This document shows positions 1,408 through 63,819 of a stretch of DNA of 64,000 nucleotides, in pieces. Made by a program: the position numbers and the translations under genes. Each line of letters opens with the position of its first letter. Positions within the stretch are counted from its first letter, which is position 1. A model generated the notes under the pieces. The model was given only the letters and a program-made list of their open reading frames with translations, was not told where the DNA came from and did no database searches. Location of the stretch: IMG/VR virus record IMGVR_UViG_3300046616_000314, positions 496,001 to 560,000 of that record. The stretch is one strand, 5' to 3'.

Positions 1408-1408
<1 letters not shown>
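1118..1408 (-). CDS. Hypothetical membrane protein
   Basis: Two hydrophobic segments; abuts the serS stop. Confidence 0.6.
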
Positions 1409-3612
<2,204 letters not shown>

Positions 3613-12315: not shown

Positions 12316-12807
12316 TTAACTCAAGTAAATTCGTGCTTTCATGGCGTCTTCGACATATTGGAAGACAAACGAAGTATCTAGTTCGGCGAAAAGCCCTTCG
12401 CACCGATCCTTCAACCATTGCAGGTTGGATTTATCATCGCGGATGCGCTTCTTCTTCATGACGCGATAGACCTTGTTATTTTCATCGCGTTCGAAGCCTG
12501 GGAAGCCCGCTTGTTCCAGAACCCTTGATTGACGCTTGTTAAGACGGCGCCATTCCCAGTAAGGCAAAAGATACTGGTTGGCGGTGTTCGCCGTGATTTC
12601 ATACATCGTCATGTAACGACTATCAGTCACGCGAGCATATGGGCGCCGCACCATTTCCGCGATCTTGAACGGGCGGTTTTGGGGACTGACCTGTTTCGTC
12701 TCACGTTCTGGCTGCACCTGTTTAGGTGGCACGTATTCCACGTGTGGAAGCCAGTATTGAGGATCAGGAGAAACCATATCACCAACATTAATTGAAATTA
12801 TAGTCAT
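12316..12807 (-). CDS. Hypothetical protein, possible divergent LKW-family member
   Basis: WLKDRC...FVFQYVEDAMKARIYL. Confidence 0.6.
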   Translation of the reverse strand: MTIISINVGDMVSPDPQYWLPHVEYVPPKQVQPERETKQVSPQNRPFKIAEMVRRPYARVTDSRYMTMYEITANTANQYLLPYWEWRRLNKRQSRVLEQAGFPGFERDENNKVYRVMKKKRIRDDKSNLQWLKDRCEGLFAELDTSFVFQYVEDAMKARIYLS

Positions 12808-12911
12808 ATATTAACGCAGGAATCCCACAAGTCAAGTATTAACTGAGACTATTACGAATTCTCCTAAATAAATACAGTAAGTGCCTTTTACAGGCTATTA
12901 AGGAGATATTC

Positions 12912-13496
12912 ATGGCTACGGTTTCCAATTTCGGAATTCCTAATGGCGGTGGCGGTGGTCGTGGCGGCTTCATCCATCCCAAGACAAAGCAGAAGTTCCG
13001 CGTCCGCGTGTTCAATTTTGGACCGGTAGCCGGTGGTTTGGAACTGACGCAACAAGTTGAGACGGTTGATCGTCCCGGCGTTACTTTCGATTCGAACGAA
13101 GTTCACTCGTACAACTCACTGGCGTACTACGCTGGTAAGGCGAAGTGGGATTCGATCAACCTTGTTATCCGTGATGATATTTCTAACTCGGTAAACAAGT
13201 TGGTCGGACACCAGTTGCAGAAGCAAATGAATTTCTTCCAACAAACGTCGGCTGCTGCGGGTTCGAACTATAAGTTCCAAACCTTCATCGAAACCCTCGA
13301 CGGTGGTAATGACACTGTGTACGAGCAATGGACTCTTGAAGGCTGCTTCCTAGAATCCGCTAAGTACGATCAGTTTGACTACAAGTCGAGCGATCACATG
13401 ACCATCCAACTGAGCATTCGTTACGATAACGCAACCCAATCTGACGGCTTGATGGACCTGAATCCTCAACTGGGCGTCGGACCTATGCAAATGTAA
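12912..13496 (+). CDS. Tail tube protein (gp19-like)
   Basis: QQVETVDRPGV...WDSINLVIRDD...WTLEGCF...LSIRYDNA; AGGAG RBS; ATAAATA at 12868. Confidence 0.85.
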   Translation: MATVSNFGIPNGGGGGRGGFIHPKTKQKFRVRVFNFGPVAGGLELTQQVETVDRPGVTFDSNEVHSYNSLAYYAGKAKWDSINLVIRDDISNSVNKLVGHQLQKQMNFFQQTSAAAGSNYKFQTFIETLDGGNDTVYEQWTLEGCFLESAKYDQFDYKSSDHMTIQLSIRYDNATQSDGLMDLNPQLGVGPMQM

Positions 13497-51937: not shown

Positions 51938-52012
51938 TGGTAGACCGGGTGGGGATCGAACCCACGACAATCCGATTAAAAGTCGGATGCTCTACCACTG
52001 AGCTACCGGTCC
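51938..52012 (-). tRNA. tRNA-Lys(TTT)
   Basis: Cloverleaf; TCCGA-CTTTTAA-TCGGA; GTTCGAT; CCA encoded. Confidence 0.95.
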
Positions 52013-62845: not shown

Positions 62846-62877
62846 TTGACGCTCACTCGTCGTTATGAGATAAATAG
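62846..62877 (+). promoter_or_regulatory. Promoter of the second leader/tRNA operon
   Basis: TTGACG-N17-GATAAATAG. Confidence 0.7.
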
Positions 62878-62933
62878 AAATACGAACTGCCACTGAGGCG
62901 GCTCGCAACCCATTTTTGGAGACCACCAGTTCA

Positions 62934-63059
62934 ATGACTCGTTCGTTCCACATTGTTGCAGATATCACCAGCGCGGGCATTCCAGCCGCCGCTGTGATGA
63001 TCCGTGACTTTGCGAACCAACCCGTCAATCAACCGGGTCTCGGAGGCATGTACGTGTAA
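62934..63059 (+). CDS. Putative attenuator leader peptide MTRSFHIVADITSAGIPAAAVMIRDFANQPVNQPGLGGMYV (41 aa)
   Basis: Manual translation; GGAG upstream; followed by a terminator and then tRNAs. Confidence 0.6.
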   Translation: MTRSFHIVADITSAGIPAAAVMIRDFANQPVNQPGLGGMYV

Positions 63060-63087
63060 ACTGAATATCATCAGTTTTAGGGTACCG

Positions 63088-63122
63088 AGCCTCCTGAACG
63101 TAAAGTTCTGGGGGCTTTTTTA
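63088..63122 (+). terminator. Attenuator terminator upstream of tRNA-Ile
   Basis: AGCCTCCTGAAC-GTAAA-GTTCTGGGGGCT followed by a T run. Confidence 0.8.
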
Positions 63123-63141
63123 ATGCCCGAAATCCTGATGG

Positions 63142-63217
63142 GGTCCTTTAGCTCAGTTGGTAGAGCATCGTCTTGATAAGGCGAGGGTCGCTGGTTCAAG
63201 TCCAGCAGGGACTACCA
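63142..63217 (+). tRNA. tRNA-Ile(GAT)
   Basis: TCGTC-TTGATAA-GGCGA; CCA. Confidence 0.95.
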
Positions 63218-63257
63218 AATTTTTAACTCTAACCGGAAGCCTTATCAACTTCCAAGT

Positions 63258-63332
63258 GGTGCTGTAGCTCAGTGGGAGAGCATCGGGTTGTCAGTCCGAG
63301 GGTCGCGGGTTCAATCCCCGTCAGCACCGCCA
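63258..63332 (+). tRNA. tRNA-Asp(GTC)
   Basis: TCGGG-TTGTCAG-TCCGA; CCA. Confidence 0.95.
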
Positions 63333-63745
63333 CTTTCGCAGAGGAAGAAATTCCAATGCAAAATTTTCTGATTTGCCTCCCCGGCTGTTTCGATGACCGG
63401 GGAGGCAGGTAAGGAAATGGTCTTTGACATAACACTCATACTTTTTGAGTGCCTGAATATTATCAGATGGGAACAGTGCCGTTCCTGTGCATGGGAATCA
63501 TTTCGTGCTTAGCAGTCTGATATGGGAAGAAATACAGTCACCAAGCCCTGTAGGCTTGTTCTGACTGTTGGCAACTCCACCCGCCTACGGGCGTTTCGGG
63601 CACTTTAATAGTATGAGCGTTGTGTCGGTCTTTGACATTGTTGAAAAAACAAACAGTACACCCCGCCGTGGCGACGATGATCGCGGCGGGGTGACAGGAA
63701 AGTTGCGCCAAGTATCAACCGTGGTACTTCGCATAACTTTTCTGT

Positions 63746-63819
63746 TGGGGAATGGTGTAATGGTAACACGCTGGGCTTTGGTCTCAGAATTCTAGGTTCG
63801 AGTCCTAGTTCCCCAACCA
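63746..63819 (+). tRNA. tRNA-Gln(TTG)
   Basis: CTGGG-CTTTGGT-CTCAG; CCA. Confidence 0.93.

Follow-up and report, generated by a model that had tools for sequence, protein, structure and literature searches.

A predicted leader-peptide attenuator in front of a tRNA operon in an uncultivated huge phage

Organization of the leader unit

We analyzed a window of 64,000 nucleotides (positions 496,001 to 560,000 of IMG/VR record IMGVR_UViG_3300046616_000314), which forms the end of a 561-kb contig of a myovirus-type huge phage. Near the end of this window, a promoter, a 5' hairpin, a Shine-Dalgarno (SD) site, a short ORF encoding MTRSFHIVADITSAGIPAAAVMIRDFANQPVNQPGLGGMYV and a terminator hairpin followed by a U-tract precede genes for tRNA-Ile, tRNA-Asp and tRNA-Gln (Table 1). 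Every feature listed in the initial annotation was confirmed, including its codon counts for the leader ORF, that is four Ile codons (ATT/ATC), two Asp codons and two Gln codons (CAA). The tRNA genes were identified with ARAGORN and supported by Rfam (65-68 bits). By extending the search to the contig, we found Pro(GGG), Asn(GTT) and Pro(CGG) tRNA genes on the same strand just beyond the window, so that the guess of the initial annotation that more tRNAs would lie there is correct. The 300 nt between tRNA-Gln and tRNA-Pro(GGG) are not unusually structured (z=-1.3) and gave no Rfam hit.

Table 1. Features of the leader unit and the downstream tRNA genes. Coordinates are those of the window; L001 is the locus designation used for the coordinates beyond it.
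Feature	Coordinates (strand)	Description and support
-35 box	62846-62851 (+)	TTGACG of the conserved leader-unit promoter (62846-62877); followed by a 17-nt spacer ending in TGa (62866-62868)
Extended -10 region	62866-62877 (+)	TGaGATAAATAG, with GATAAATAG at 62869-62877; transcription start inferred a few bases downstream, near 62880-62884; promoter function inferred from conservation and TGn geometry
5' hairpin	62887-62901 (+)	CUGCC-ACUGA-GGCGG; a local hairpin at the same position in all u2 homologs, with different sequences (RNAalifold, columns 40-54)
SD-like site	62918-62921 (+)	GGAG, 12 nt before the ATG; 11-12 nt spacing kept in the u2 homologs; conserved start context TTCAATG
Leader ORF	62934-63059 (+)	ATG at 62934, 41 sense codons plus TAA (63057-63059); also called as a gene by public gene callers
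Candidate sensor codons	63015-63035 (+)	Codons 28-34, AAC CAA CCC GTC AAT CAA CCG (NQPVNQP)
Antiterminator 5' strand	63042-63053 (+)	GGAGGC (63042-63047) and GTAC (63050-63053), inside the ORF; nascent-RNA fold
Inner hairpin	63058-63077 (+)	AAACUG-loop-CAGUUU; starts inside the stop codon and forms the tip of the antiterminator; helix 3, 97% of cells paired
Antiterminator 3' strand	63082-63094 (+)	GUAC (63082-63085) and GCCUCC (63089-63094), the latter also the 5' arm of the terminator
Intrinsic terminator	63088-63121 (+)	Hairpin 63088-63115, an 11-12 bp stem with one U.U mismatch (-18.8 kcal/mol; -18 to -19 kcal/mol), then U6 (63116-63121)
tRNA-Ile(GAT)	63142-63217 (+)	First gene after the terminator, 20 nt after the U-tract
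tRNA-Asp(GTC)	63258-63332 (+)
tRNA-Gln(TTG)	63746-63819 (+)
tRNA-Pro(GGG), tRNA-Asn(GTT), tRNA-Pro(CGG)	L001 12596-13292, same strand	Just beyond the window

A simple consensus scan listed neither this promoter nor this terminator, since the -10 GATAAA lacks the T at position 6 and the stem has a U.U mismatch. Both assignments therefore rest on folding and on conservation in relatives. The exact promoter pattern was found only twice in the window and only twice in the whole contig, and both copies sit in front of the two leader units. The same 32-nt pattern precedes most of the leader units that we found in related phages, with small variants at loci L124 (unit u1, see below) and L164. Apart from the related phage loci, none of the other matches to the promoter pattern in viral, metagenome or bacterial-genome collections is followed by tRNAs; a scan of genome contigs, which served as a negative control, gave 22 chance hits, none with tRNAs. 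The tRNA genes at 52012, 54927 and 55327 have promoter-like sites without a leader ORF or terminator.

Conservation of the frame and of two mutually exclusive structures

We then searched for relatives of the unit and found six further homologous units in related uncultivated phages, hereafter called u2 together with the window unit. All of them keep the homologous frame open (41-46 codons), with indels in multiples of three, conserved SD and start context, and a labile peptide sequence. In the close group, 10 columns vary only synonymously and 13 non-synonymously. In contrast, GenBank phages, near and distant, showed only tRNA-level similarity, and the 423-aa upstream neighbour found only itself in IMG/VR and in a set of 5.8 billion proteins. 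A pattern combining the -10 region and the start context gave three chance hits besides the window and the related locus L016, while the 20-mer following the terminator identified loci L009/L054 and one unrelated terminator. Finally, SerRS used as a handle mostly retrieved bacterial SerRS, and its best phage-like hit, a 1.1-Mb contig, has no tRNAs near the gene.

The pairing between GGAGGC near the end of the ORF and GCCTCC in the terminator, proposed in the initial annotation, is the base of a larger composite antiterminator present in all seven homologs. In each of them the nascent RNA pairs the ORF end with the 5' arm of the terminator, and the predicted antiterminator (-21 to -32 kcal/mol) is stronger than the terminator (-17 to -21 kcal/mol). 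The two structures are mutually exclusive because they share 63089-63094. In L016, a different and unrelated 10-bp pair, GGCTTCATCA:TGATGAAGCC, does the same job with the same overlap. Shuffling the ORF end gave P=0.038 for the window unit and 0.004 or less for the three relatives tested. On a six-sequence alignment, the antiterminator pairs 94% of cells, against 34-46% when slid, with three compensatory pairs, including pairs in its middle helix. The terminator helix is 92% paired across homologs, also with three compensatory pairs, and its stem is followed by U6-7. Moreover, GGAGG starts exactly 15 nt before the stop in six of the seven homologs, which is one footprint edge, and the distance from the stop to the end of the U-tract is 62-67 nt in all seven. 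This geometry fits the statement of the initial annotation that a ribosome at the stop codon would mask the pairing. By geometry alone, a ribosome at codon 32 or earlier would leave it free. The terminator lies between the only nearby promoter and the tRNAs, and the 19-nt gap in front of tRNA-Ile leaves no room for a separate promoter; similarly short gaps are found in most homologs.

We found no conserved anti-antiterminator. A long-range pairing of the 5'UTR with the ORF end, seen in the minimum-energy fold of the window leader, could have played this role, but we rejected it because relatives have only a local 5' hairpin. An untranslated leader would therefore read through, unlike the trp paradigm.

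Match between leader codons and downstream tRNAs

Paralogous units sharing the promoter, chassis and spacing precede Leu/Arg/Lys/Trp (u1), Ser/His and Ser/Tyr/His operons, and their codon runs match their own tRNAs. Unit 1 of the window has 9/9 consecutive cognate codons, the L009 unit has SSSSHCSSSHS in front of Ser(CGA)/His/Ser(TGA)/Ser(GCT)/Ser(GGA), and the L120 unit has SYSSCYLLSYAH in front of Ser/Ser/Tyr/His. The corrected P is 0.0003 or lower for these three units and 0.005 or lower for every u1 and Ser-type unit. Each leader matches its own operon with a mean z of +3.2, against -0.7 across families, and only in the ORF frame. Thus, four leader families (u1, u2 and the L009 and L120 Ser-type units) bear out the idea of a reusable module put forward in the initial annotation.

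For the unit studied here, the match is statistically weak. All six downstream tRNAs have a cognate codon in the leader, but covering all six is, by a rough estimate, only about a 1-in-10 event, and the whole-ORF match is not above chance (12/40 against 24.7% expected, P=0.27). Ala, Gly, Thr and Ser codons have no partner tRNA in the operon, and the window leader matches the Ile/Val/Gln/Phe/Met/Pro set of its relatives (z 2.0-2.2) better than its own set (z 0.8). Locally, however, six of the seven codons of NQPVNQP are read by the downstream tRNAs Asn(GTT), Gln(TTG), Pro(GGG) and Pro(CGG) (scan-corrected P about 0.045), three of which lie beyond the window. The homologous NQNIQP cluster in L124 scores 6/6 (P=0.017), and the NQNIQP codons vary only synonymously. 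Since Asn and Pro(CGG) have their own promoter-like site and terminator, their match would act only in trans. Interestingly, Asp codons occur only in this leader and tRNA-Asp occurs only in this operon, and within-family covariation of leader and operon gave a permutation P of 0.025. Also, Leu is depleted among the hydrophobic residues of u2 leaders (5/60, P=8e-5) and enriched in u1 leaders, which mirrors where the tRNA-Leu genes sit.

Interpretation and comparison with known systems

Together, these data suggest that the unit is a ribosome-mediated transcription attenuator controlling a phage tRNA operon, a reading to which we give a probability of roughly 0.6 in the absence of expression data or any experimental test. 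In this model, the promoter starts a leader RNA of roughly 240 nt carrying the ORF, whose translation is inferred. As RNA polymerase moves on, the last codons of the ORF can pair with GUAC and GCCUCC, which uses up the 5' arm of the terminator, and transcription runs into tRNA-Ile, tRNA-Asp and beyond. If the ribosome translates the leader quickly and reaches the stop codon, its footprint (about -15 to +12 around the stop) would cover the 5' strand, the terminator would fold and transcription would stop 20 nt before tRNA-Ile. Slow decoding would therefore turn the tRNA genes on and fast decoding would turn them off. Slow decoding could come from scarce charged tRNA for leader codons, notably the Ile/Asp codons and the Asn-Gln-Pro cluster, and the result would be a negative feedback on tRNA supply. 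That ribosome position decides termination and that the signal is specific to the tRNAs encoded downstream are inferences. The SD-to-ATG spacing is long, no RNA run holding this sequence was listed, and contigs from four other metagenomes showed only tRNA-level matches and a few low-depth fragments, none covering the leader usefully.

It is possible, although unlikely, that the switch is real but not tRNA-specific, the leader reporting overall translation capacity or transcription-translation coupling, for example early versus late infection or ribosome availability, with a codon content largely inherited or incidental. The non-significant whole-ORF match and the better fit to the tRNA set of the relatives favor this view, as does the lack of an anti-antiterminator, since any delay anywhere upstream of about codon 32 would cause read-through. 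On the other hand, the unmistakable codon runs of the paralogous units, the conservation of the local NQP cluster with only synonymous changes, the within-family covariation and the partition of Leu between u1 and u2 leaders speak for specificity.

Less likely still, the ORF might encode a functional small hydrophobic (membrane) peptide with its own terminator, the tRNAs being made by constitutive leaky read-through and the complementarity having no regulatory role. Indeed, the u2 peptides of relatives look like a single transmembrane helix (19-residue hydropathy of 1.85-2.30, against 1.57 for the window peptide) and show some purifying selection, and another terminator sits directly upstream of tRNA-Pro(CGG) without any leader, so that leaky terminators before tRNAs exist in this genome. 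However, the window peptide is only 32-42% identical to the others and carries Asp and Arg inside the hydrophobic stretch, Leu, the commonest residue of membrane helices, is nearly absent, and the same chassis carries basic (u1) and Ser-rich (L009, L120) peptides that share no peptide property. Neither the exact -15 position of GGAGG, nor the fixed 62-67 nt spacing, nor the compensatory antiterminator pairs are explained by a plain gene end. We consider it very doubtful that the transcript is a non-coding structured small RNA or a processing leader with the open frame as a by-product. Although the leader folds far better than shuffles (z=-5.8, and z=-5.6 for unit 1) and attenuator-derived small RNAs with trans functions such as rnTrpL are known (PMC6614838), pairs internal to the ORF are not conserved whereas the frame, start context, SD and 3-nt indels are, despite the low peptide identity, and there is no Rfam match. 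A trans function of the terminated RNA would not exclude the attenuator.

A broader reading, which we hold to be only slightly more likely than not, is that a clade of huge phages runs its tRNA operons from duplicated, codon-customised attenuators, each switched on when ribosomes are slow on the very codons read by the tRNAs it encodes. This would give the phage a self-tuning tRNA supply and may also give an automatic response to host tRNA depletion or to anticodon-nuclease defences. It would be the first case of ribosome-mediated attenuation governing tRNA genes. If so, it would explain how large phages dose their tRNA arrays, link phage tRNAs to the current debate on host tRNA depletion and tRNA-cleaving defence systems, assign a function to small ORFs in phage tRNA clusters and supply compact natural sensors for the availability of specific tRNAs. 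The four leader families on one chassis also form a natural experiment in how an attenuator is re-targeted by changing only its codon run.

The tRNA gene clusters of large phages such as T4 and T5 likewise appear to be arrays interspersed with small ORFs and small RNAs, but our full-text literature searches found no leader-peptide attenuator described for them, nor any other precedent. In Sinorhizobium meliloti, the terminated RNA and leader peptide of the rnTrpL/peTrpL attenuator may also act in trans (PMC6614838, PMC7298713), which bears on the hydrophobic u2 peptide and the well-folded leader RNA; no trans function is indicated here, and the comparison only shows that the rival readings need not exclude the attenuator. 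T-box riboswitches also monitor tRNA status through terminator/antiterminator competition upstream of translation-related genes, but they bind uncharged tRNA directly and need no ORF or ribosome, and neither a specifier or T-box motif nor an Rfam T-box hit was found here. Leader-peptide attenuators of amino-acid biosynthetic operons (trpL, hisL, leuL, thrL, ilvL, pheL) have a promoter-proximal short translated ORF, an intrinsic terminator before the first regulated gene and an antiterminator that shares a strand with the terminator, ribosome position deciding which structure forms; runs of the relevant codons are found in our paralogous units. Here, the genes concerned are tRNAs in a phage and not enzymes, the sensor would cover several amino acids at once, matched to the tRNAs downstream, the ORF is longer (41-46 codons) and no conserved 1:2 (anti-antiterminator or pause) hairpin was found. 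Moreover, only tRNA hits reached the Rfam gathering score, with no leader family even at E up to 5. The pheM-pheST attenuator of E. coli and leader-peptide control of aminoacyl-tRNA synthetase genes, of which actinobacterial examples have been discussed (PMC1262725), likewise seem to read the level of charged tRNA and adjust a component of the translation apparatus. The output there is the synthetase, whereas in the switch proposed here it would be the tRNA genes themselves, which would close a direct feedback loop on the molecule being sensed.

Genomic context and anatomy of the leader unit

The window belongs to IMGVR_UViG_3300046616_000314, a viral contig of 561,116 bp from a rhizosphere metagenome that encodes a tail sheath, a tail tube, a large terminase, a collagen-like tail fibre and a seryl-tRNA synthetase (SerRS). 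It also carries 13 tRNA genes in the window and three more in the last 1.1 kb of the contig, and from all these features we conclude that it is a huge myovirus-type phage. Its SerRS is closest to alphaproteobacterial enzymes (55-57% identity), which is only a hint about the host, and in relatives (the related phage contig L124) this gene lies directly downstream of the tRNA operon of the homologous unit to the one studied here. Another SerRS, 62% identical to that of L124, was found in L133 (GCA_043956695.1, contig JBINOA010003469.1, 1,136,180 bp), whose gene content is phage-like, with many small unknown ORFs, ribonucleotide reductase and SprT, but which could be either a very large phage genome or an assembly or binning artefact. 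We also noticed a 375-aa protein of the window with a weak match to the ADP-ribosyltransferase domain of polyvalent proteins, although this match (22 bits) is below the Pfam cut-off.

We could confirm every feature of the leader unit listed in the initial annotation, that is a promoter, a 41-codon ORF, two complementary hexamers and a terminator hairpin followed by tRNA-Ile(GAT), Asp(GTC) and Gln(TTG). The exact promoter pattern occurs twice in the window and twice in the whole contig, and both copies precede the two leader units. A simple consensus scan missed both the promoter and the terminator, given that the -10 GATAAA lacks the final T and that the stem has one U.U mismatch, so that both calls rest on folding and conservation. 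In contrast to these units, the tRNA genes at 52012, 54927 and 55327 have promoter-like sites directly upstream and no leader, in agreement with the initial annotation, which had pointed to the tRNA operons at 52012 and 55327. The region between tRNA-Asp and tRNA-Gln contains two GC-rich hairpins without U-tracts, the first of which is overlapped by an 18-codon ORF, as well as two occurrences of a 12-mer.

Coordinates of the features of the leader unit and of other loci of interest
Feature	Sequence	Coordinates	Strand	Description
-35 box	window	62846-51		TTGACG, followed by a 17-nt spacer ending in TGa
-10 region	window	62869-77		GATAAATAG
Leader start codon	window	62934		ATG, then 41 codons
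GGAGGC	window	63042-47
Leader stop codon	window	63057-59		TAA
GCCTCC	window	63089-94
Terminator hairpin	window	63088-63115		-18.8 kcal/mol, followed by T6, with tRNA-Ile(GAT) 20 nt later
Post-terminator 20-mer	window	63116-63135		TTTTTTAATGCCCnAAATCC
Post-terminator 20-mer	L009	5882-5901		TTTTTTAATGCCCnAAATCC
Post-terminator 20-mer	L099	750-769		TTTTTTAATGCCCnAAATCC
Region between tRNA-Asp and tRNA-Gln	window	63346-63693
18-codon ORF	window	63346-63402
GC-rich hairpins	window	63363-63418, 63659-63693
Repeated 12-mer	window	63419, 63627		GGTCTTTGACAT
Sister unit	window	58200-57836	minus
Sister unit ORF	window	58113-58021	minus	30 codons
Ser-type unit	L009	5672-6281
Ser-type unit	L120	3749-4487
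SerRS gene	window	1408-2670	minus
375-aa protein	window	49926-51053	minus
tRNA with anticodon TCA	L016	690-767
62-aa ORF inside the tRNA array, with neighbouring elements	L001 (just beyond the window)	12737-12965		own promoter-like site; followed by a fragment resembling a tRNA T-arm; strong terminator directly upstream of tRNA-Pro(CGG)

Related units in uncultivated phages

GenBank phages hold nothing similar except tRNAs. By scanning IMG/VR and JGI metagenomes with the promoter pattern, and by searching with a profile of the leader peptides against 5.8 billion proteins and against 1.8 billion cluster representatives, we found six further homologs of this unit (hereafter u2) in related uncultivated phages, designated L016, L116, L124 (=L108), L161, L162 (=L163) and L164 (=L165), while a seventh is known only as a peptide (P0127). 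The same searches identified homologs of the other (sister) unit of the window (u1) in L016, L116 and L124, together with two further unit types, one in the contig L009 (=L054) in front of Ser(CGA)-His-Ser(TGA)-Ser(GCT)-Ser(GGA) and the other in L120 in front of Ser(GCT)-Ser(GGA)-Tyr-His. Apart from the related phage loci, none of the other pattern matches in viral, metagenome or bacterial-genome collections is followed by tRNAs. The tRNAs of these relatives include a tRNA with anticodon TCA in L016, called SeC by ARAGORN and possibly an opal suppressor, in the only phage whose u2 leader ends in TGA, and an unusual A34 tRNA-Leu (anticodon AAG) in the u2 operon of L116.

The 12 units that we tabulated share one plan, and L164, tabulated separately, has it too with a slightly different -10. 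This plan comprises the near-identical promoter, a 5'UTR of 38-59 nt that begins with a hairpin in the u2 units, an SD-like site, an ORF of 28-46 codons, a small hairpin at or just after the stop codon, and a terminator with U5-U7 followed by the first tRNA. In L009, an ORF of about 85 aa lies between the terminator and the first tRNA. For the seven u2 homologs the constraints are tight, with the start context TTCAATG, GGA GGN beginning exactly 15 nt before the stop in six of them, and 62-67 nt from the stop to the end of the U-tract in all seven. Moreover, the 3' parts of the ORFs are similar at the nucleotide level across families (GGAGG-TGTKGTG in u2; CGTGTGCG in u1, L009 and L120). The families therefore look like duplicates of one chassis whose codon run was exchanged. 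Interestingly, the 20-mer directly after the terminator is shared by the window unit, the non-homologous Ser unit of L009 and an unrelated terminator in another viral contig (L099). In most u2 homologs an ATG or GTG follows the U-tract within 0-1 nt, with the GGAGG of the terminator's 3' arm placed like an SD.

Evidence on translation of the leader and alternative RNA structures

To evaluate whether the ORF is likely to be translated, we compared the homologs and found that only the homologous frame is open in every one of them, with length differences that are multiples of three. The peptide sequence is labile, the window peptide being 32-42% identical to the others. In the closely related group, 10 variable columns are purely synonymous against 13 non-synonymous, and the NQNIQP codons change only synonymously (AAC/AAT, ATT/ATC, CAA/CAG and CCA/CCC), which keeps the amino acids of the cluster the same. 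ORF-internal base pairs, on the other hand, are not conserved. This pattern fits a translated leader better than a structured non-coding RNA, although the evidence for translation is indirect and the SD spacing is long. Contigs from four other metagenomes gave nothing useful on the leader.

Then, we folded the nascent RNA from 30 nt before the stop to the end of the terminator's 5' arm. In all seven u2 homologs the ORF end pairs with that arm in one long composite hairpin, made of an outer stem (GGAGGY:GCCUCC), a middle stem and an inner hairpin (AAACUG/CAGUUU), with an energy of -21 to -32 kcal/mol against -17 to -21 for the terminator. Shuffling the ORF end gave P=0.038 for the window and 0.004 or less for the three relatives tested. 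On a six-sequence alignment the antiterminator pairs 94% of cells, against 34-46% after sliding, with three compensatory pairs in the middle stem, whereas the outer stem never varies and so carries no covariation signal. The terminator pairs 92% of cells, also with three compensatory pairs. L016 achieves the same overlap with an unrelated 10-bp pairing that covers its stop codon. The u1 units and L120 show the same design, but in L009 the minimum-energy fold of the nascent RNA does not pair the ORF end with the terminator arm.

Based on established footprint sizes, a ribosome with the stop codon in its A site protects roughly -15 to +12, which is exactly the span of GGAGG, the middle 5' strand and the 5' arm of the inner hairpin. 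A ribosome with its A site at codon 32 or earlier leaves GGAGG free. We found no conserved partner that would sequester the GGAGG strand in an untranslated leader. The default state should therefore be read-through, and a completed translation should cause termination, which differs from the trp paradigm.

Codon content of the leaders and comparison with known attenuators

We next asked whether the leader codons are read by the tRNAs encoded downstream, with cognate codons defined by standard wobble rules and backgrounds taken from long ORFs of each locus. In window u1, the nine consecutive cognate codons (CTG CGT CGC CGT AAG TGG CTT CGA CGC) are read by the six tRNAs that follow (Arg, Arg, Trp, Leu, Leu, Lys). 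The leader of L009 contains SSSSHCSSSHS before its Ser/His/Ser/Ser/Ser tRNAs, and that of L120 contains SYSSCYLLSYAH before Ser/Ser/Tyr/His.

Best local cluster of cognate codons in individual leaders
Unit	Best local cluster	Scan-corrected P
window u1	9/9 consecutive cognate codons	0.0000 (0 of 3000 simulations)
L009	10/11	0.0000 (0 of 3000 simulations)
L120	9/14	0.0003
L124 u2	6/6 (NQNIQP)	0.017
window u2	6/7 (NQPVNQP, codons 28-34)	0.045

For window u2 the whole ORF scores 12/40 against 24.7% expected (P=0.27), and this unit is the least convincing member of the class on codon content. Its best cluster is read by Asn(GTT), Gln(TTG), Pro(GGG) and Pro(CGG), and three of these tRNAs lie just beyond the window, where the initial annotation had anticipated that more tRNAs may be found. 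However, Asn and Pro(CGG) have their own promoter-like site, and a terminator precedes Pro(CGG) without any leader. In a leader-by-operon matrix, each leader family matches its own operon type (mean z +3.2) and not the others (-0.7), and this holds only in the ORF frame, but the window u2 leader fits the tRNA set of its relatives better than its own. Within the u2 family, leader composition tracks the tRNA set of the operon (permutation P=0.025). Asp codons and tRNA-Asp both occur only in the window, and L016 has the most Gly codons and carries two tRNA-Gly genes. Since these sequences are related and some operons are truncated by contig ends, this result is only suggestive.

The u2 peptides have a transmembrane-like look. 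Leu is strongly depleted among the hydrophobic residues of u2 leaders (5/60, P=8e-5) and enriched in u1 leaders (17/27), which matches the placement of most tRNA-Leu genes in the u1-side operons. This also suggests that the transmembrane-like look is a by-product of an Ile/Val/Phe/Met/Ala-rich codon set.

Taken together, the comparative evidence supports the interpretation of this unit as a leader-terminator switch in front of a tRNA operon, although, in the absence of experimental data, translation of the ORF, the control of termination by ribosome position and the specificity for the downstream tRNAs are inferred. The unit has no similarity to the Rfam leader or T-box models. No description of leader-peptide attenuation of tRNA genes was found in full-text literature searches, although most subscription journals were not covered and an older report cannot be excluded. 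On this reading, the unit works like the leader-peptide attenuators of amino-acid operons, whose structural criteria it fulfils except for the anti-antiterminator. What would be new is the output and the logic, that is tRNA genes controlled by a leader whose codons are read by those tRNAs, in a phage, on a duplicated chassis with exchangeable codon runs.
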